DNA of 63,857 nt, filler included, from Pelomyxa schiedti (lineage: Eukaryota; Protista; Evosea): assembly GCA_020536535.1 (NCBI GenBank). It is 11 parts of 11 records of this genome, joined end to end, with 100 filler letters (N's around TTAATTAATTAA, not from the genome) between each part and the next. Parts side by side here need not be neighbours in the genome. Positions count along the whole stretch, not along the records: positions 1 to 10,449 come from JAHLWZ010000459.1; 10 more parts are not named here. One strand, 5' to 3'. Positions 1 to 10,449 of this stretch are shown here, piece after piece; position 1 is the stretch's first letter; every line of letters starts with the position of its first letter. Under the pieces are notes generated by a model, which had not been told where the DNA came from, did not search any database, and was given only the letters and a program-made list of their open reading frames with translations. Both the position numbers and the translations under genes were made by a program.

Positions 1-3000
1 GAGGTCTCCAGTGGCCAGGGATTGCAAGTATTGTGAGTAGCTGTTCTTGACCTCAGTTAAAATCACCGACATCATCGATGCAGCGTCGGACTTGCTGCAC
101 TTCTTCACAAACGACTTTGGGAAGCCTTTTGTACCAGAGTGTGAGCATGAATAGGAAAAAAAAAAATAGAGACAGAGCCCTCACCTCACCTGCACCTCCA
201 GGTGCCGGAGAAGTCATCCACGCAATCAACTCATCGAATGTGTTCTCCTGTGCGTGAGGAAAAGGCGAGAATTCAATCACTGCGAGGAGAATGAAGAACA
301 AGGAAAGCGCCATACCAGGGCAAGGGGAACAAAGATAAACCTCAGTTCGAGTGCCATGAGAGCTGTTCGCCACCTGTCCTCCCACGGAACCTTGTTCTGA
401 TCGTGAACGGGGTGGCTGTCACCCCCTGTGCTCTTTGACCACTTGTGCGGAGGTGCATCCCCAGCCACAACGATGGTGTGGCAACCGGTGCCCCACGAGA
501 ATGCAAGGGCCGAATCCAGTCCCGTGACGATATCCTCTGGGGTGTCCCCGCCACCAGAAGCAGCAACACTGGCGAGGAAATCTTGAACTGCCTTGCTGGG
601 TGAGAAGGGGCACGGCTGTGGGTGCCCTTCGTCACCAATGTCGCGGTATCCAACGAATCCGACGTGCGCCTGTATCGTCGATGCGCTAGCATATCCGGAC
701 TTGGTGCTTGAATCCTGACAATGCTTCTCCACTGCTTGTATGCATGAAACGATATTCTGTTTGCAACTTGAGATATAGCTTCCCATGCCTATTGGAAAAA
801 GGTCTCAGTAGGTGCTGGGTGTGGAGATCNNNNNNNNNNNNNNNNNNNNNNNNNNNNNNNNNNNNNNNNNNNNNNNNNNNNNNNNNNNNNNNNNNNNNNN
901 NNNNNNNNNNNNNNNNNNNNNNNNNNNNNTGAATCCTGACAATGCTTCTCCACTGCTTGTATGCATGAAACGATATTCTGTTTGCAACTTGAGATATAGC
1001 TTCCCATGCCTATTGGAAAAAGGTCTCAGTAGGTGCTGGGTGTGGAGATCATTGAGTGGAAGGCATTCGCATTGATGATAAAAGGAAGAGGGAGAGTGAA
1101 GTGAGGGAAACATACTGCCAGTGGCATCCATCAAGAAAACGACATATTGATCTCTGCTTCCATGTCCAAACCCCGCGATTGAAGAACAATCAATCGAGGT
1201 GAGATGCACAGTGGGTGCGGTATCGTCAAATCCCGAAGTTGATGCCGAGCCGGGGGAGGGGGTGATCGATCTTGAAAAGTACCCACCAGGTGGAGCGGAA
1301 GCTGTGGAGTGGGGTGCAGCGGCAGACCGTGCCCATTCATGATAATATTCCGTGCGGTGTTTCATATTAGTTCTCAGCTTGCAGGTCGGACCATCTCGAC
1401 AAGGAAGCAAGAAATCCCAAAAGCCTGTGTACCTTTAAGTTTACAATAAATAATATTTCACTGTGGAACCTTTATGGAACTTGGCACGTCTATGCTCAGG
1501 ATCATCAAGTTGAGGACAGGGAGATAGCGTGCAAACTGGCTTCTCCATGTGTATGTAGAACTTACAATGCTCTTCCTCGTGCACAAGGTTACAAGCTGAC
1601 CCCCACAAGCACACATGAACAAATTCGGTGCAATGCGGACGCTTTTCAAAATCTAAACAATCTGTTGCTTTGGGACACTTTGGTAGATCACTGGAATCTG
1701 TGCTGCCAAAAAGGAAGTCCAATCCTCTTCTCCACAACGATTTCTGAGGCTTTTCTTCGTCGGCTGGTGTATCACAACCGTCCACGGTGGAAGAAGTTGG
1801 TGGTAAGGGTGACCTCTTGGGTGTAGGAACTGTGGGTGGTGCTTCACCAGGCATGGATCGCTGGGACAACAAAACTTCCAAGTCAGCAATGAGCACTGAA
1901 CCAGTGGAAAGGTGGAGGGAAATGAACTTGAAATTTGTCAAAGGTTCAGCTGAATCAGGGCATTCGAAATTCAAGGAAGTCATGTTAAATCTCCTGGAAG
2001 GCCCCCAGTGTTCCACTGTCACCAGGTTTGCGTTGTAGTCCAGCCGAACGTAATAGTGCACAAACTCAGCACAGTTGATTCCGTTGTTGAAGGCAGCCAT
2101 TTCGGTGTGAGGTGGTGCACCCTCACAAACCGCCGGGAGATCTCTGTACACCTTCAGGGAATCTTCGGAATTTGCTGTTTTTTATGTGGTGTTAGATCTA
2201 GTAAAGGAGTGGACTGTGACACATACTTGGAATGTGGATTGTGATGGCATGCCTGTCTTCACCATGGTGCAAAATGTCCCCTGTGTTTGACAAACACAAG
2301 TTGAAACCTGTTGCTGTTGTGGAATGAGCCTTGAAATACAAATGAGACTTGTGAGACTCGGACGAATGCAGGTTGACGGGAACGAAAGTTTCGTGCGTCG
2401 GGTGTTGTTCAACAACGAAGTAAAATCCTCGTGGCTGAACAATAAGTGGGTGCTCAAAGCGGGAGTCTGTGAATTCGAGAGAGGCTTTCACGACATCGGG
2501 AACGAGTTTGTGGTGGAAGTGTTTCAACATGTCACTCAAGTGTGGTGTCAACGCAACACTTTTCTTGATGAAAATTGTGTCAACGTATCCAAATGGAATG
2601 TAACCGGGCAAATGGGCTTCGGTGACTCCATGAGAGTCAGTCTCCATCCACAAATTCCTCACGTGGTTGACATCTACTTTGTGGGCCTCTATAGTCTGCT
2701 TGGTCGAAACTCTGCAGACCCATTCTTTCGACTCCGCGACAGCCCAATCAAGGGGACCCAAAGCAGTTGACTCCCATGTGTCGGGTTTCACACACGGGTG
2801 GAACTTGGCACGCGTGAATGCAGTCTCCCCTCCTTCTGTCCACCCCTTGCTCTTGCCCATCCAACTCCTTCTGTCCAGGCATATTTTGCCACCACTTGCG
2901 AATGTATACCACCCAGTGGGATAAGCGGTTGCTGCGAGTGGCAACATGTAAAAGTCGGGGTGATGCATGATCTCGCGCCTCAAAACGATGCACACTTGTT

Positions 3001-6000
3001 TGTCGCCGTAGTGGCCTGTGTTTGGTCCCATCGATGCAAAGACAGTGAAGTCGGTTCTTAAACCCTTGTCTTTGGAATAATTGATTCCAGGTGCTTCAGC
3101 AATGCATTTCGCAACAGCATTCACGATGGTGGTGATTGTATCGCTCATTTTCGTGTGTAGAGTGGCATTGCATTTCTTGAGGACTTGAGAGGCTCCAAGT
3201 AACTTCTCTTCGTCTTCAAGAGTCATGATGGGAGTGTGTGAGAACAAGTTCTTTGAGCCCTGAATCTTGGCTGCTTCTTCTGGATCGAGATCTGGAGTTG
3301 TTGATTTGGTTTCTAACAATTGGATACACTTCTCGGAGACGGAAGGTTGAAGAGATCGCACGAGCAGGACACCATATTCACGAGCACATCGATGGAACCC
3401 TTCATTCTGCCCAACGAAATGAGGCCGAACATCGGGGTGGTTGATCACACAGTGAACAACAGACGAAGGATCCTGCCACAGAGACTTGAATTGTTGTGCA
3501 GAGGCGATCAGTTGAATGTCCAGCATCGATGTCAACAAATCGACACTGCACATGTGAACTGGTTGTTGTGCTCGGAACCATCGCACAATATTCTTGAAGT
3601 TCGAGGTGTTTAAAATGGAGTCATCTTTCAAAAGTTTCTTGCAATGTTTCTCCCATCGCCGAATGTTGTCAAAGAATGCAACTCTGATGGGCGTTGTGGA
3701 ATCAGTTCCAACAGCCTCAGGGTTCTCCTTCTGGGCAAACTCAGCAGGGTCGTGCAGCGAAAGATGTCTGGTTGGAGACCAAGGAAGAACCGGAAGTGAA
3801 TGATTTTTCGATCGAAGGTGGGATTCACTGTTGTCAGTGCACCATAAATCCGTGCAGTGAGGTCGAGATATTGGGATTCCAGGGTGTGCCACGGATCCCA
3901 AGTGATCTTCGTGGAGGTTTCGGCAAGCCGGAAGGAACTTGCACTTGACATCGGAATGGAGGAAGTGTTTGGTGTGGCTGGGATCTCCCAGACGGTCACA
4001 GAACACACCCCTCTCACACATGTGAGCGTACAAGCTGTGGTGTTCCTTGTTCGATTTTGGAATGTCGCATGAGTATGGGGTGTGTTCACATGGTCTGTTG
4101 AATGGGTGATAGAATTTGGCGAGGTGACTTCTCTGGTATACATCATTACATAGATACCCAAAAGAGCAGTCTTCAAGAAGATGCCTTGCTTCATTCATGT
4201 GACTTTCATCATGAGCAAGGAATTTCTCACATCGAGACCCGTGCTCGCACTCAGGAACATGCAAGAATTCAGTCATGTGTGCGGTGTTTTCATTGCGTTC
4301 AGTGCAATGCCCCATCTTCGGGCATTGAGGTGGATGCACGAAGTGCAAGCAGTGCTCATCACGCTGTGGGGAAAAGAACTCTGGACATGTTCCACCCAGT
4401 GGGCATTTGACTTGGTGCAGCCACATGTGCTGGTGGATGGCCGACGTGCAGGTGCAGGAAGTCCCATTGAGGCATGGTGGTGGGTGAACAACTGAGGCGA
4501 AGTGTCCAGCGGAGGTGTTCGTGCAACCTCCACCATACCCACAGATGGCTGGACCATCAATATAATCACCTGTGTGGCTGAGAGGGATGAAGCCAGGCTT
4601 TACGACTGGCAGCATGACATATGGGCCAACAGCTTGAGTAATTTGGGCAGCTGGACCAAATTCTGCCTTTTCCCTTCGTGTTGTAACCCCGGTTTCGTCG
4701 AACTTTTTTGCAAAGGCTCTGCACTTGCCATTGGTGGCTGAAGAACCATCACTCTCGAGAATTGCAAAGTACACCCTTGAGAAACAGCCAGCGTATTGTT
4801 GCAAAACCTCCTTGAAGATTGCGGCAACGTGGTCTGCATCACCATCAAATGTGCATGACAGTTTCGAATAGTGTCGGCAACAAAGGGGATATTGTATTAT
4901 CAGAGGTGAGGGAAAAATAGATGAATGGACGTCAAACCTGGTGGGTTGTTGAAGGCACCACAACCAATTGCCCCGAGAACCAGCTGCTTCACGTTGTACA
5001 TGGCTGCAGTGTTCAAGAGCTGTTCGAGCTTGAACCTCGTGATCATCGCCGCACTCGGTGACAGGAACACCTCCCCAGTCCTTGGATCCCTCACGGTGAA
5101 CTTGTTGTCAACATTGTGAAGCGCAGCCGCTGAGATGACATTCACAGTCCAAGGAGTCGTGAGGAACTGGAACCCTGTCAAGGAGGTATCTCTGAACACC
5201 GTGACATCACGAGTGAAGATGGTGCCACATAGTGGCAGTGGGTAACCAATCTGCTTCAGTGCTGGGAACAGTGATGTCCGCATGCACAAGTCTTCCTCTT
5301 GTGCACTTTTCCCATTCTCAAATCCACCCCCGGGTGTCGTGGAGTTTGCCATGTTCAGAACAGCTGTTGGTTTGTTTTATGTGTGAATGAAGAAATCAAT
5401 TATCAATCACACACAGAGAGATAAAGAAGGGTGTGAGAAAGAAGATCACAAGGGGGAAAGGGAAAGGGAAGAAGAAAGAAACCTGTGAGTTCACCAGGAA
5501 ACTGTTGCATGAGCTGCTGTGCGACATGGAGGCAGTCCATGTTCACGATGAACACCTCCGTTGCACTGTTCAGTGCGGGGTGCTGTGGCAACGGTTCCAG
5601 TTTGTAATGTGCCATGCTCAGTGCTTTGGTTGGAGGGTGGAACACTCCACACAGCAACCCTCTGTTGCTGTTCATCTCGTCTTCTTCCTTGGAGCATATC
5701 ATCTCCTCTGCCATCAAAGCTGCAGGTGATCCAGCAGTGGTTCCATCTTCAACAGCCTCGATATTGGCTGCCTTATTATTTTCATCACTCCTTTCCTCGA
5801 TGAGGAAATAGACACCAGGTGAGCTTGGGTTCAAAGCATGCAAGGTGAAACCAGCACTCAATATTTGCAGGTGAACAATTAATTCATCCCTCCACACAGG
5901 TGTGTTGTTGTCAATGCACCTCTGTGCGTATTTGTTGAATGTCTTTCTCCACGTGAATGAGTCCCAAGGTTTGGAGAGAACTGAGAATTCCAAACTTGGA

Positions 6001-9000
6001 GTTGTGTATCGGTTTAAGTTTTCAAACCTGTCGTCGTTGGTGAGAGGCACTCTTTTGATAGACTGGGGAAGAGTTTCATGTCGGTCAGGTATTGGTCTGG
6101 GTTGAACTTCAAAAGAAGGTGGTAAAAGTGTCACTGTGATTTCTCTTTGCTTGCCGGCACAGATGAACAAATTGTCAGTGCTGATCACTGTCACAACGAA
6201 CTCCCCACTGCTGCCATCTGTGGGTGAACAGGAGGAAGATGAAACATCGATGATTGGTTGCCGGGCTTGGAACAGAAACCGGAACAGGTGATTGATCGAA
6301 GGTGCTGTTACACGAACCTAAGTTTTTTTTTGGGTTGATTCTCCAAGTGAGATCAAGAAACCAATGAGTGAGATGAAGATTTGAACCTGTGGGCAGAGTT
6401 CAAGTGCTCCAATGCTGGCAGGAAAGCGCAATGACAGTGCAATTCCCAGGTCTTTTGAGAACGGAAGTGGGAAAGCAAGGAATGTCCTGTTGTTGTCAAT
6501 CACAATGCGGGCATCTCTTGGGTATTCCCTTTGAGACCAGTCAGATGTGAGTATCAGTGAATGACGAAATGGAAGGAACACGGCTCACCCTGTTGTTTCA
6601 AAGACCATTGTCTTGTATCCCGTGATTGCTGCTGTTTCTGGCTTGCATTTTGGTTCAAAGAAGGTCCAAATGTATTCAACTCTCTGGCAGAAGAATTTGG
6701 TTGCCCAGTGTAATGCTTCAGCAGACGGTGACTGTGGCCCAAATGGTAGTTTCTCAAGATGTCTTTTCAGTTCTTGTGCTTTCCTTCCGTCATCCAGAGG
6801 GTTCAGTGAGAACTGGAACGAAGCCATTTTGTGATGTGGCAGGTTTTCAATTGTTCCAAGATGAACAGGTTGCACTGAGAGTGAAAGTGAAAATTTGGGA
6901 GCAATTGCATCAGGTGATATGGTGCACCCTCTTGGGAAAACCACAGTCAGATCAAAACACGCAGGAAGTGGAATCTTTGAGAAAATCACAGCCACAGACT
7001 CACAGAATATCTGAACGATGGTATCGGCAATATTCACATCCACTTGTTTGTCCAGAAGCCACTGCTGCAACCTTGCACCATGTTGCATGAACCGATCCAG
7101 AATCTGGCCCTTCAAGCACTCAAATGATGGTGCCCACACCAGCTGGAGGATGTCGGCACCAGTCCATCTCTGGATTGTCTGAAAGTCTTCACAGCTCTTG
7201 ATTGGAAGTGGTGGCCCATTGCCCCCACCAGTCATGACACAACGGAGGTAAAACTCAAGTCCAACCCATTGCATCACGTGAAGTGCCTTCGCACCTTCTG
7301 CTGCAAGAGTGTTGTGCAACCTCCTGAGTTGCTCGGTTACAAATGGAAGTGGCAATCGACAGGCAGGGTGGATGTTCTTGCTCTCGTTGTTGTAAGCATT
7401 TAGAAGCTCTGACTCTTGCAAAGGTCTCTGGTTCACATCTTTTTATTTTAAAAGGATGATTAAAAGATTATGCAACAAACATACAGGGGAAACACACCAG
7501 AACACTTTATTTGCATAACCTTCAAGTTCTCGTTTGAATCAAACAATTCACTGTGATACATCCTCACAAGATCGTAAACATTGATATCCTCCGGGAGATT
7601 CTTTCCAAGTGCCTGAAAGAACGGTTCCGCAACCCTTCTCATCACAACGTGGAGGGAAACAGTTGCAGCGTTGGTGTGCTCGTTCAGCCTCTGATTCACT
7701 GCTGGAAGGAACGTGTCGATGGCCTCTGTTTGTACCGGGTCGAATCGCTGGAGCTGCGATGTCAGCTCTTGCATCTTCTTGTGTGCGGCTGCCATGAGAG
7801 CCTCGGAACTCGTGAGATCGGTGGTGTGCAAAAAAAAGTCTCTGACAGCGATTGCAACTTGTCCAGCACAGAACGTGGCTGCTTCTTGCCGAAATTTGTT
7901 TGTCTGTGTGTTGAAAAAAAAAAGTCAGGGAACAAACTGCCACGGAGATAGTGATGAAAAGAGAGGGAGTAGATGAAATGGGGGTGTGACACGAACCAAT
8001 GCTTCACTTTCAGCTGTGATCCTGTCCTCCACCTCTCTTTTGAATCTTGCCAAATCCCAGTTTCTTGTTTTCCCCTCGACTGTTGGTCCCTTCATTCCCA
8101 CAACTTCTCCCAATCTGTGCTCAATGGATTTCATTGCAAGTCCAATTGCCACCTGAATTTAAATTTGAGTGAAACGAAAATTAGGAGTCTCACGAAAAGC
8201 AAAGTCCATAAACTGGGTGCAAACAACGGCAAAAATAAAACCTGGACAAAAGAGGGAGCAACAGGAGGTGGTGCAGCAGTCATCACTGCGCTGAAGTGTG
8301 TCTTGACATCAGAAAACACAGCATCAAGAGCCTCCAGTCGCTTTGAGTCACAGTAAAAGTCAACAACCTTGACCATCTGTGGTGTTTCCAGCTTGCCATT
8401 GACACCCTCCAAGACTGTCTGGACGAAGAAAAGAAACGTGCTCCCTGTGACTTCGATGGTGTCTGTTACTTTTTCCCCCCTCTATTCGTTTTTTGGTTTT
8501 TGTTTGTCAATGAGTTAAGTGCACTGGCCATCAGAATCAAAAGGTGAGCAGGAGAAGACAGTACCAGCCTGAGAGGTGAAGTGGTCAATGTTCCAACTCG
8601 CACGAAGATCTGTTTCAACTTTGCAATGAAATCAGCATGTGTTGGAACGTCTGGTCTTCCCTCATATGAGCATGGTGGAAGTGTGAAAAATTTGAATGGT
8701 TTCACACTGTTTGGAAACAATTTTTCGAATTCTGGTGGAAGCTTGGAATCATATTCATTCCCCTCTGTCCAGAATGCATCATCTTAATAATTGGGTTTTA
8801 ACTATTTTGAGGAAGTTGGTGTGAGAGTTACCTTGCTCAAGTGTCCAATTCTGCCCGAAGTTCTGTGCAATGTATGCAAACACAGAGGGGCAGTTCTTCT
8901 TGAAAAGAATGTCACTCTGCCGATTGCTTTTGAAATCAGAAATTGCATCTGCGAGGTCCTGATCAGAAAGAATTGTCAGAGTCAAATAAAAAACGTAAAA

Positions 9001-10026
9001 AAAGATTGTATGTTTGTATTGAACCTTCAAAGTGGTTTGGTCTTGTTCATTCCAAGAGGGAGTTCGACGCAGGAACAAAATTGTGCTGCTCATGAAGAAG
9101 ACCAGGATCCACAACCGTGTGAAATAGTATTGGTCCACATCAGATTTTCGCCGCGAACTCATGGGGTCGACGGCATAGAGTCCTTCAACATCAACCAACA
9201 GAACTGGTATCTCACACCCGGGAATCTGTGTTGTGTGAGGCAACCAAAAATAAATGAACGTCAATACGTTGATCAGACTTGGGAAAAACCAAATGCCAGA
9301 AGTGCAACCAAATTTCAAGTTGTCTGAAAGAGAAGGTGTCATTAAAATGCAGCAAAGCAGTCATGAAAAATATCCCGCGTGTGCTGCACTTTGTTTGTTT
9401 TGGACTTGGGGCTTGCTTACCAGAGGTGACAAACGGATCAGTGTTTGTGCCCTGGAGAATCTGGATTGCGTAATTGAGCAGTGTTGACTTGCCAGTCCTC
9501 GTTGGGCCCAGCACTGACACCGTTGCAAATTTTTTTTCTCTGATTGAATCGAAGAACTGCCTCACAGACTCTGACTGATTGAGCACCAAAGGTGCCCCTG
9601 ATCCGTGTTTGTATGCCCACATCTTATCGTTGAACGACGCTGGGTTCTCCTCCCTGTGAAACTCTGTTGCACCCCCCCCCATAAGTTGGAAGCCAAACAA
9701 AAAAAACAAACAAAGCATAAAACTGGAAAAAAACCCAGAAGTCAAACCAAAGAAGAGCAAGCATATACAGAAACCAAAACTCCCGCACACGCGCACAAGC
9801 ACACAAACACACCCATCGCCTCGAGCACAGGGCCGATGGTGGGCACGTCGCGGTCGTACACGTTCACGAGGCTAGGAAGCACAAGCGGCATCGTGCCGCC
9901 CACAACATCTACGCCCGCGCCGCTATCGGCATCTGTTACGCGAATGGAACCGCTGCCCCCTTCGTTTCCCTGCTGTTGCGGCGCATCGGTGTACACTGCA
10001 CTGGTCGGTGTTGTGGTTGTTGCCAT
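1..10026 (-). CDS. Giant multi-exon gene: GBP/atlastin-type GTPase - unknown region - bacterial-type PARG - 10 PBZ fingers - ART-like domain - beta domain - 4 PBZ fingers - VWA (3' end wraps to 10449-10245)
   Basis: ATG at 10026 (MATTTTPTS). Most exon junctions could be joined in frame with GT-AG introns, e.g. 7497-7439 (CS/DVNQ), CPQ/VRVT, ELT/AVLNM, NPP/DHVAA, HIP/TNSED, DATG/SMGSY. Junctions around 8800-7830 were checked less closely. Confidence 0.85.
320..1150 (-). other. von Willebrand factor A (VWA) domain
   Basis: MIDAS-like VVFLMDATGSM (spliced), VGFVGYRD, GGGDTPEDI, W...IVVAGDAPPH. Confidence 0.88.
1327..1680 (-). repeat. Second cluster of 4 PBZ-like zinc fingers
   Basis: CPKATDCLDFEKRPHCTEFVH, CLWGSACNLVHEEEHCKFYIH, CTLSPCPQLDDPEHRRAKFH, CRDGPTCKLRTNMKHRTEYYH. 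Confidence 0.75.
2560..3570 (-). other. Putative ADP-ribosyltransferase-fold domain (DarT/DUF3626-like)
   Basis: PVHMCSVDLLTSMLDIQLIAS resembles the DarT-type HxTxxxNLxSIL...LLS strand. VFASMGP..HYG..VCIVL and TEAHLPGYIPFGYVDTIFI (candidate catalytic Glu) follow. Motif resemblance only. Confidence 0.5.
3800..4543 (-). repeat. Array of 10 tandem PBZ-like (CCHH) zinc fingers
   Basis: Repeated C-x4-6-C-x6-10-H-x5-H units, e.g. CGYGGGCTNTSAGHFASVVH, CSFGYLCNDVYQRSHLAKFYH, CERGVFCDRLGDPSHTKHFLH. They resemble the PBZ consensus CxY/FGxxC...HxxxF/YxH. Confidence 0.8.
4720..5570 (-). other. Bacterial-type poly(ADP-ribose) glycohydrolase macrodomain (DUF2263/TIGR02452-like)
   Basis: AVLNMANSTTPGGGFENGKSAQEEDLC carries the PARG signature GGG-x6-8-QEE. 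LVLGAIGCGAFNNPP/DHVAAIFKEVL and FSRVYFAI follow. Confidence 0.92.
8600..9560 (-). other. Guanylate-binding protein/atlastin (GB1/RHD3) GTPase domain
   Basis: P-loop VSVLGPTRTGKSTLLN (GPTRTGKS at 9508-9485), G2-like CTSGIWFF, G3-like LLVDVEG, then LVFFMSSTILF and FKFFTLPP. Order and spacing match GBP-family motifs. Confidence 0.85.
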
Positions 10027-10244
10027 TTTGAGGTACTCTGAAGGCAACAACAACCAACCTTGTGTTTACGGGTTTGCACTTCAACGTTGGTTTTGATTAC
10101 CGAGGTCTTCCCAAAGACAAAAAGAAAAGCCTTAGGAGAAAAGTTCCCAGTTGCAACTTGATACTAAAGCTCACTTCGCTGTCTCAACTCTTCCTGGGCT
10201 TCTTATGATCTGGCTCCCGCGGCTTCTCCTCGTTGGGTGTGGAA

Positions 10245-10449
10245 CTACCACGGTTTGGAACGTTTTGTTGAGCCGGGGTGGAAGCTGCTGTGCCTGATTG
10301 TTGGGGGTCTTGGGTAACTGGCCTGTGTGAGGTCTCCAGTGGCCAGGGATTGCAAGTATTGTGAGTAGCTGTTCTTGACCTCAGTTAAAATCACCGACAT
10401 CATCGATGCAGCGTCGGACTTGCTGCACTTCTTCACAAACGACTTTGGG
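10245..10449 (-). CDS. 3' terminal exon of the giant GBP-PARG-VWA gene (same gene via circular join, or the neighbouring tandem copy)
   Basis: 10329-10449 is identical to 1-121. The frame FPKSFVKKCSKSDAASMM... continues to a stop at 10245. Confidence 0.8.

Follow-up and report, generated by a model that had tools for sequence, protein, structure and literature searches.

The first 10,449 positions of the 63,857-nucleotide (nt) stretch of DNA analysed here (the window) are a complete scaffold of the anaerobic amoeba Pelomyxa schiedti, whose minus strand appears to encode a GBP-like large GTPase, a poly(ADP-ribose) glycohydrolase (PARG), arrays of zinc fingers and a VWA domain. The question that this locus raises is whether these parts belong to one protein and, if they do, what such a protein would be for. 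Our answer, to which we give a probability of roughly 0.6, is that the scaffold holds a single gene for a protein of ~2,720-2,763 residues, which belongs to a family with the domain order PARG, fingers, helical domain, core and beta-sandwich, falls in a GBP-bearing subfamily of it, and would act as a GTPase-assembled module of the ADP-ribose cycle. GBPs are known as interferon-induced coat proteins of vertebrates, and bacterial-type PARGs as small stand-alone enzymes. Covalently joined, the two would tie a large-GTPase assembly switch to the protist ADP-ribose cycle.

Used as the query of a protein search, an open frame of 969 codons at 2201-5107 (minus strand) led to a P. schiedti protein of 2720 amino acids (aa), KAH3762375.1 (here P0001), which is deposited in GenBank as "TIGR02452 family protein [Pelomyxa schiedti]" and was found to be the identical gene product. 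It maps exactly onto the scaffold in 20 exons, separated by 19 GT-AG introns of 42-149 nt, with its ATG at 10026 and its stop codon at 53-55. The mapping was performed on a collapsed sequence (1-829 joined to 1051-10449), which is justified below. The preliminary description of this DNA had proposed one spliceable minus-strand gene, and the deposited model bears this out. Separate GBP and PARG genes can be rejected, because introns so short leave no room for them; those between the large open reading frames (ORFs) of the GTPase and the PARG measure 59-119 nt (93-146 nt around exon 8). Domain boundaries are also crossed by exons: exon 14 holds the tail of the PARG, the first finger array and the helical domain, and exon 17 holds both the fourteenth finger and the first strand of the VWA domain. 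This is one genuine single gene, already deposited. Its parts, in the order of the gene, are as follows.

53-10026, minus strand: whole coding region of KAH3762375.1, from exact spliced mapping on the collapsed scaffold
8395-9628, minus strand: GBP-like large-GTPase G domain (P0001 residues ~84-335), from Pfam GBP, the orthologue profile and motifs
9485-9508, minus strand: G1 P-loop, GPTRTGKS
9289-9306, minus strand: switch I, T-GIW (CTSGIW)
9181-9192, minus strand: G3 or switch II, D-x-E-G (DVEG)
9025-9102, minus strand: 26 codons spliced out by the annotated model, homologue of the GBP 'LLSSTFVYNS' segment, from tblastn of orthologues
5589-8394, minus strand: middle region of ~810 residues (P0001 336-1147), a putative helical stalk and unassigned sequence
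4736-5588, minus strand: bacterial-type poly(ADP-ribose) glycohydrolase macrodomain, from PF10021, TIGR02452 and solved PARGs
5293-5331, minus strand: PARG signature, GGG-x7-QEE
4945-4974, minus strand: diphosphate loop, GAIGCGAFNN
3800-4543, minus strand: array 1, ten PBZ-like CCHH zinc fingers, from pattern count and profile
3107-3679, minus strand: conserved helical domain preceding the core, including the annotated intron 3400-3450 (AlphaFold2, pLDDT 86.9)
2429-3106, minus strand: conserved enzyme-like core, labelled 'ART-like' after ADP-ribosyltransferases (ARTs) (P0001 1884-2109), from alignment and AlphaFold2 (pLDDT 88.8)
1834-2428, minus strand: ConA-like/galectin-like beta-sandwich, from Foldseek against the PDB
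1339-1677, minus strand: array 2, four PBZ-like CCHH fingers, the last sharing exon 17 with the start of the VWA domain
179-1152, minus strand: VWA domain, with a MIDAS-like D-A-T-G-S across the exon 17/18 junction, from Pfam VWA_4 and relatives
532-555, minus strand: VWA motif GGGDTPED (candidate MIDAS Thr)
445-468, minus strand: VWA motif VAGDAPPH (candidate MIDAS Asp)

By its own sequence, the assignment of the Pelomyxa GTPase is marginal. Pfam GBP (PF02263, cut-off 21.1) gave the whole protein 20.6 bits, and residues 60-560 by themselves 24.8 bits, in a match that spans profile positions 8-91 of 264. In PDB sequence searches, the first GTPase exon gave nothing useful, and the best matches of the GTPase alone, a GBP-like Xenopus protein and atlastin-1, were at E 0.14-1.2. 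A GBP-type G domain is nevertheless confirmed by comparison with three orthologues, P0045, P0161 and P0162, which themselves score 52-58 bits on Pfam GBP. One of them, P0162, matches human GBP2, GBP1 and GBP5 at E 3e-10 to 2e-7, and atlastins at 1.7e-4 or weaker. A profile of the three matches the Pelomyxa G domain at 92 bits, and pairwise comparison of each with the G domain of the corrected gene model (see below) gave 66-78 bits. GPTRTGKS, CTSGIW and DVEG line up with the orthologues and with GBP2; the GBP-type P-loop first noticed in this gene is upheld, with T-GIW and D-x-E-G downstream of it. The domain resembles GBP1, GBP2 and GBP5 in its P-loop with the GBP Arg (RTGKS), its switch I and switch II, and a hydrophobic 'SS..(V/I)..N' helix. 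Unlike GBPs, it is highly divergent (PDB E of at least 0.14 when searched alone), its G4 R-D is apparently replaced, no GBP helical domain or GBP_C region is detected by sequence, and in place of an isoprenylation tail ~2,400 more residues follow downstream. The middle region at 5589-8394 gave no Pfam match (E <= 10) and no phmmer or HMM match to relatives. The PARG domain begins at a nearly constant position (residue ~1136-1224) across the GBP-PARG proteins, despite the unalignable middle region.

The same orthologues bear on the gene model. Alignments by tblastn of P0045, P0161 and P0162 run through 9025-9102, and restoring this segment by way of an alternative in-frame donor of exon 4 adds 16-22 bits against the orthologues; the annotation of the paralogue described below retains it. 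The segment is probably coding, in which case the deposited choice of donor omits 26 conserved residues of the G domain. Similarly, an annotated 51-nt in-frame intron at 3400-3450 takes out 17 conserved residues. Reading through it raised the score by 7-20 bits in six of the nine scoring homologues and by ~1 bit or less in two, and lowered it in none, which suggests that this intron is probably spurious. The best model would probably have ~2763 aa, the annotated one lacking 26 + 17 residues.

The PARG domain scored 66.2 bits on PF10021 (DUF2263; cut-off 23.5) and 109.9 bits on TIGR02452 (cut-off 50), in agreement with the DUF2263-type motif reported earlier, and matched the PARGs of Deinococcus radiodurans and Thermomonospora curvata at E 6e-19 and E 1.4e-14, respectively. 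Its catalytic signature, GGGFENGKSAQEE, and its diphosphate-binding loop, GAIGCGAFNN, align with the corresponding D. radiodurans motifs, and to judge from these residues the domain looks catalytically intact. It shares the macrodomain, GGG-x7-QEE and the GxGCGxFxN diphosphate loop with the solved T. curvata (3SIG) and D. radiodurans (5ZDA) enzymes. These are single-domain proteins of ~250-280 aa, whereas here the domain occupies residues ~1148-1357 of a ~2,750-aa protein.

The pattern C-x4-6-C-x6-10-H-x5-H occurs exactly 14 times, ten in array 1 and four in array 2, as against a mean of 0.056 in shuffled sequence; the number is that given in the preliminary description. The first two Cys are spaced C-x5-C in 11 of the 14 and the His H-x5-H in all of them, with a C-H loop of 6-10 residues. 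When a profile of the 14 fingers was run against the whole PDB, the sole significant matches were two PBZ fingers of APLF (E 4e-4), which together with the spacing marks them as PBZ type. The Pfam PBZ profile (PF10283) found none in array 1 and scored array 2 below its cut-off (E 0.56, 10.7 bits); one finger of a rotifer relative reached 22.9 bits, the cut-off being 22.7. As in APLF and CHFR, Gly follows the first Cys, and the spacing C-x5-C-x6-H-x5-H occurs in 3 of the 14. Unlike in those proteins, the loop between the second Cys and the first His is 7-10 residues long in 10 of the 14, and the adenine and phosphate contacts are absent in all. In sequence, the fingers are a divergent class of the PBZ fold, for which binding of poly(ADP-ribose) (PAR) should not be assumed.

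Downstream of array 1 lies the best-conserved part of the whole family. AlphaFold2, given a 92-sequence alignment, returned a confident three-part model (pLDDT 86.9) consisting of a helical domain, an alpha/beta core and a beta-sandwich. Against the PDB, Foldseek matched the sandwich to LMAN1, galectin-8N and legume lectins (E ~5e-4, target-normalised TM up to 0.67). With all three domains it returned the lectin-like sandwich alone, and the core was therefore remodelled by itself (pLDDT 88.8). The top seven PDB matches of the core were then all ADP-ribosyltransferases, none of them significant: SopF at E 0.024 (probability 0.75) and 0.055, and five DarT-containing entries (Thermosipho DarTG, Thermus DarT and M. 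tuberculosis DarTG) at E 0.18-0.62. Their query TM-scores were 0.16-0.34, and the target-normalised ones reached 0.36. DarT1 and CteC ranked lower, CteC being 46th.

In a 99-sequence alignment of the core, G1910 is invariant in 98/98 sequences, H1932, E2046 and P2050 in 98/99 each, and R1962, W1965 and H2048 are conserved above 93%. H1932, R1962 and E2046 are the conserved residues that may be set beside the H-Y-E or R-S-E catalytic triad of ARTs. No Pfam family was matched over this region in 92 members, and Pfam at E <= 10 likewise gave nothing. A profile of the conserved region hit no PDB sequence, and PDB searches with that region (A1, A2) or with the 969-aa exon yielded nothing useful. 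Bacterial and archaeal genomes, searched with a single protein, showed no close relative of the core, and a viral structure library gave just weak, uncharacterised matches. Hence the 'ART-like' label of the preliminary description is weakly supported, as a lead and not as a finding: the top structural neighbours are ARTs, but with E 0.024-0.62, TM ~0.3 and no profile match. SopF and DarT (DUF4433) are weak structural neighbours whose alignments cover almost the whole core domain, and a candidate writer coupled to a macrodomain eraser recalls DarT-DarG. Unlike SopF and DarT, the core is eukaryotic, has no sequence similarity to them, stands at TM ~0.3, and is fused and not operonic. As a strongly conserved domain outside Pfam, it offers a specific candidate, open to experiment, for a new activity related to ADP-ribose.

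The C-terminal domain scored 27.9 bits on Pfam VWA_4 (PF25106), the cut-off being 27, and has 720 relatives at E <= 1e-3; among the matches listed, 119 of 120 carry PF00092 or PF25106. Its MIDAS-like motif is D-A-T-G-S (D-x-T-x-S), in which Thr replaces the first Ser; the VWA domain of the preliminary description is upheld, with D-A-T-G-S as its candidate MIDAS. Stand-alone VWA_4 and VWA proteins (PF25106, PF00092) of protists, molluscs and bacteria share 30-39% identity with it over the first two-thirds of the domain. In Pelomyxa, unlike in these, the domain is a C-terminal appendage and the first Ser of the MIDAS is a Thr. When Pfam was run on individual exon ORFs, only the PARG and a weak VWA were detected and the other domains were missed; PADLOC returned noise alone.

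The family as a whole was delimited with the 969-aa exon, which gave 297 hits at E <= 1e-3 (cluster representatives) in protists and rotifers. The order PARG, fingers, helical domain, core and sandwich, followed by more fingers, was observed in Euglena gracilis, Copromyxa protea, the rotifer Didymodactylos and many metagenomic proteins. Four other sequences carry the GBP N-terminus as well, namely P0045, P0161, P0162 and the metagenomic locus L002. Two of them, P0045 and P0162, are single ORFs that fill 7-kb contigs and join GBP (58 bits) to PARG. Used as the query of a word-based search, the Pelomyxa GTPase found its own paralogue alone, and P0045 was needed as query to find more fusions. In L002 the order is GTPase, PARG, fingers, core, sandwich and fingers, colinear with Pelomyxa from the P-loop exon to the second array, and the second half of the G domain lies with the PARG inside one uninterrupted 1292-codon ORF. 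A core-domain tree, many rows of which are N-terminally incomplete, places L002 as the closest relative of the Pelomyxa core. The VWA domain was found in none of P0045, P0161, P0162, L002 or the other family relatives, and is seen in Pelomyxa only.

L002 (3525-11263 of ENA ERZ21831265 ctg81773l, 362 kb) is a metagenome-assembled eukaryotic contig and the closest colinear relative. Its gene has been cut into several 'proteins' by a prokaryotic gene caller. One of these, P0002, is a piece of a split eukaryotic gene, and although this is the single such locus examined, the same may be true of other metagenomic 'stand-alone' family members.

Bacterial-type PARGs have been noted in lower eukaryotes, and PBZ repeats on a PARG of Adineta vaga (PMC4245714; PMC4030884). 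Like the PBZ-repeat PARGs of A. vaga (PMC4245714) and of Didymodactylos (P0018/P0160), the Pelomyxa protein has a PARG, then a long CCHH array and the same downstream core; the rotifer proteins differ in beginning with RING/RanBP fingers and not with a GTPase, and have no VWA. The literature found on eukaryotic PARG with PBZ mentions no downstream conserved domain, and no paper describing a GBP-PARG combination was found in the open-access literature. The earlier statement that no protein of this architecture had been described does not hold in full, as the protein stands in GenBank under an automatic family name with no characterised function, PARG with PBZ repeats had been noted in A. vaga, and at least four other GBP-PARG sequences exist in environmental or transcript data. 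As read from its domains, this unusual architecture is that of a eukaryotic bacterial-type PARG with PBZ repeats, to which a GBP-like GTPase, a VWA domain and an uncharacterised conserved domain are joined.

One gap lies inside the coding region. The scaffold holds 100 N at 830-929, enclosed by 709-829 and 930-1050, which are 121 nt each and 100% identical, and a further 121-nt repeat is found at its ends.

709-1050, no strand: scaffolding artefact, 100 N and two identical 121-nt copies, from repeat comparison and continuity in the paralogue
1-121 = 10329-10449, no strand: terminal 121-nt repeat, a k-mer overlap that covers most of the annotated last exon (53-125)

The P. schiedti genome was assembled with SPAdes (largest k = 121) and P_RNA_scaffolder, and annotated by Augustus, PASA and EVM with RNA-seq (PMC8887013). 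SPAdes k-mers of up to 121 combined with P_RNA_scaffolder joining account for two exact direct repeats of 121 nt, and since the flanking contigs overlap by k, the N gap has a negative real length. The true sequence at 709-1050 is a single copy with zero gap, and the N gap is artefactual. In the collapsed sequence a GT-AG intron of 106 nt separates exons 17 and 18, and the reading frame continues across it as D-A-T-G-S-M-G-S-Y. A paralogous contig (L005, JAHLWZ010000266.1) confirms continuity at the collapsed junction, being unbroken over it save for a 15-nt indel in the intron. This contig terminates in a 121-mer identical to window 709-829, which is followed by its own 100-N gap. For annotators, the case shows that k-mer overlaps left by RNA-based scaffolding can produce false gaps and duplicated exon starts.

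The paralogue itself (9665-11794 of L005, gene Pelo_3434, P0078) is decayed and annotated as a 308-aa protein. It retains four colinear blocks, 78-91% identical, that correspond to GTPase exons, PARG, part of exon 14 and the start of the VWA domain; it carries large internal deletions, and the order GTPase-PARG-finger-VWA is kept.

We propose that the GTPase would undergo nucleotide-dependent self-assembly or switching, as in GBPs and atlastins, and that this assembly would concentrate a module of the ADP-ribose cycle. Within the module the PARG, an exo-acting 'eraser', would trim ADP-ribose chains, and the core, with its invariant H, R, E and H, may add or process ADP-ribose. The assembly would be anchored to its target, a polymer or a protein, by the multivalent fingers, the lectin-like sandwich and the VWA domain.

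Several observations weigh against this proposal. Both GTPase-driven assembly and a transferase activity of the core are inferred, and the modelled similarity of the core to ARTs lies below any significance threshold (E >= 0.024, TM ~0.3, no sequence-profile match). At the position aligned with G4 (8857-8877, A-Y-I-A-Q-N-F) Pelomyxa has A-Q-N and the three orthologues A-R-R/K; we take the reference to be the (T/S)(L/V)RD of human GBP1, with R-D at the aligned position (the GBP2 alignment ends before G4). Q-N thus appears to stand for R-D, which makes GTP specificity uncertain and hints at an altered nucleotide specificity across the whole GBP-PARG clade. For the ~810-residue middle region, which cannot be aligned, no homologue was detected, not even among the other GBP-PARG proteins. 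Pelomyxa and L002 are separated from P0045 and P0162 in the core-domain tree, which neither establishes nor rules out that the fusion arose once. The last 829 nt, with most of the VWA domain, come from a contig that is entered from a k-mer common to the paralogue. Finally, in APLF the contacts to PAR are an aromatic residue two after the first Cys, and an aromatic followed by a basic residue after the second (PMC6264785). This full triad, C(M/P)Y...C-Y-R, was found in 0/14 fingers here and in 0/988 fingers of relatives, and the PAR sensing formerly attributed to them is not supported.

Whether the core is a transferase at all we regard as an evenly balanced question. It may instead be another enzyme, for example a hydrolase of ADP-ribose adducts or of glycans with its lectin-like sandwich, or a non-catalytic binding domain. 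It has no sequence or profile match to any ART, its TM of ~0.3 is under the usual same-fold range, its invariant H/D/R/E/H set would also fit a metal- or acid-base hydrolase, and a carbohydrate-binding-type fold always comes next downstream. A random fold would however be unlikely to draw ARTs as all of its top seven PDB matches, and from two unrelated families, SopF and DarT (with CteC 46th). Moreover, an invariant Glu stands at the start of a predicted beta-strand, near residue 163 of ~226, where the catalytic Glu of DarT lies, and the domain is accompanied by PARG wherever enough of the protein is available. The more ambitious reading, in which the core founds a new eukaryotic ADP-ribosyltransferase family and the whole family is a single-chain writer, reader and eraser, which in the GBP-bearing subfamily is assembled by the GTPase on a target such as an intracellular bacterium, symbiont or virus factory, we consider unlikely. 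If true, it would make the protein an innate-immunity device of protists that links GBP-type coating to ADP-ribosylation. P. schiedti hosts prokaryotic endosymbionts (PMC10579272), and for this reason the idea of a role in immunity or symbiont control, put forward in the preliminary description, is a reasonable one; an immune role for the protein is, however, speculation.

A role in DNA damage or stress is a serious rival to the immune one. The protein might serve housekeeping PAR signalling, as a DNA-damage or chromatin-stress factor in which the GTPase and VWA are mere assembly modules, with no part in immunity or symbiosis. The main carriers of PBZ modules are DNA-damage-response proteins, and the modules are expanded in Amoebozoa (PMC4245714; PMC4030884); a rotifer member carries RING and RanBP fingers, typical of nuclear and ubiquitin pathways. 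We find this reading possible yet doubtful, given that GBP-type GTPases, a lectin-like sandwich and VWA are atypical of chromatin factors, that the fingers are without PAR-contact residues, and that Pfam scans detected no nuclear-targeting or DNA-binding domain. A role in conflict or stress surveillance is favoured only slightly. It might also be argued that the gene is a chimera of assembly and annotation, with parts of two paralogues or of neighbouring genes, notably the VWA-bearing 829-nt contig, joined by RNA-based scaffolding, and with fewer real domains than it seems. The scaffold does consist of two SPAdes contigs and 100 N, its joining 121-mer also ends a contig in the scaffold of the paralogue, its own ends overlap by 121 nt, and the VWA is present in no relative. 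Such a chimera is nonetheless very improbable: the long contig already contains the VWA start (first strand and D-A-T-G-S), on an exon shared with finger 14, and a VWA therefore follows the fingers regardless of the join. Furthermore, the 121-nt overlap is exact and in frame, the decayed paralogue is colinear up to the VWA start, and the GBP-PARG linkage is seen independently in single ORFs elsewhere. The reading of one GBP-bearing PARG protein assembled by its GTPase is the one that we retain as the more probable.

Some minor observations concern the scaffold and its annotation. Exactly 121 identical nt are shared by the two ends of the scaffold; this is the largest k of the assembler, and the two contigs thus form a cycle in the assembly graph. 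If this cycle were real, the last exon and stop codon would lie ~300-350 nt upstream of the ATG of the next tandem copy. A circular or tandem 10.1-kb element was rejected as an established fact, because a collapsed repeat explains the end overlap at least equally well; the overlap equals the k of the assembler, the neighbouring k-mer node is common to the paralogue, and the end overlap may equally be a collapsed repeat common to paralogues. Searches of the scaffold for tRNAs, Rfam families, tandem repeats and inverted repeats found none. For the last exon the annotated donor, GTCTCT at 173, seems weaker than another at 189, GTGAGG, use of which would change the C-terminal tail and carry its frame across the terminal repeat and beyond the scaffold end. 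The true stop codon is uncertain on account of this alternative tail, and the VWA homologues, which stop short of the C-terminal tail, do not discriminate between the two last exons. Exon 2 can be read on without a stop into annotated intron 2 (9324-9420), where its frame yields a second segment, 'T-R-G-I-F-F', that resembles the switch I 'T-S-G-I-W-F-F' of the next exon; it may be what is left of an exon that was duplicated or of an alternative one. Beyond the 100 N of the paralogous contig, an unrelated bromodomain-like gene lies on the opposite strand.

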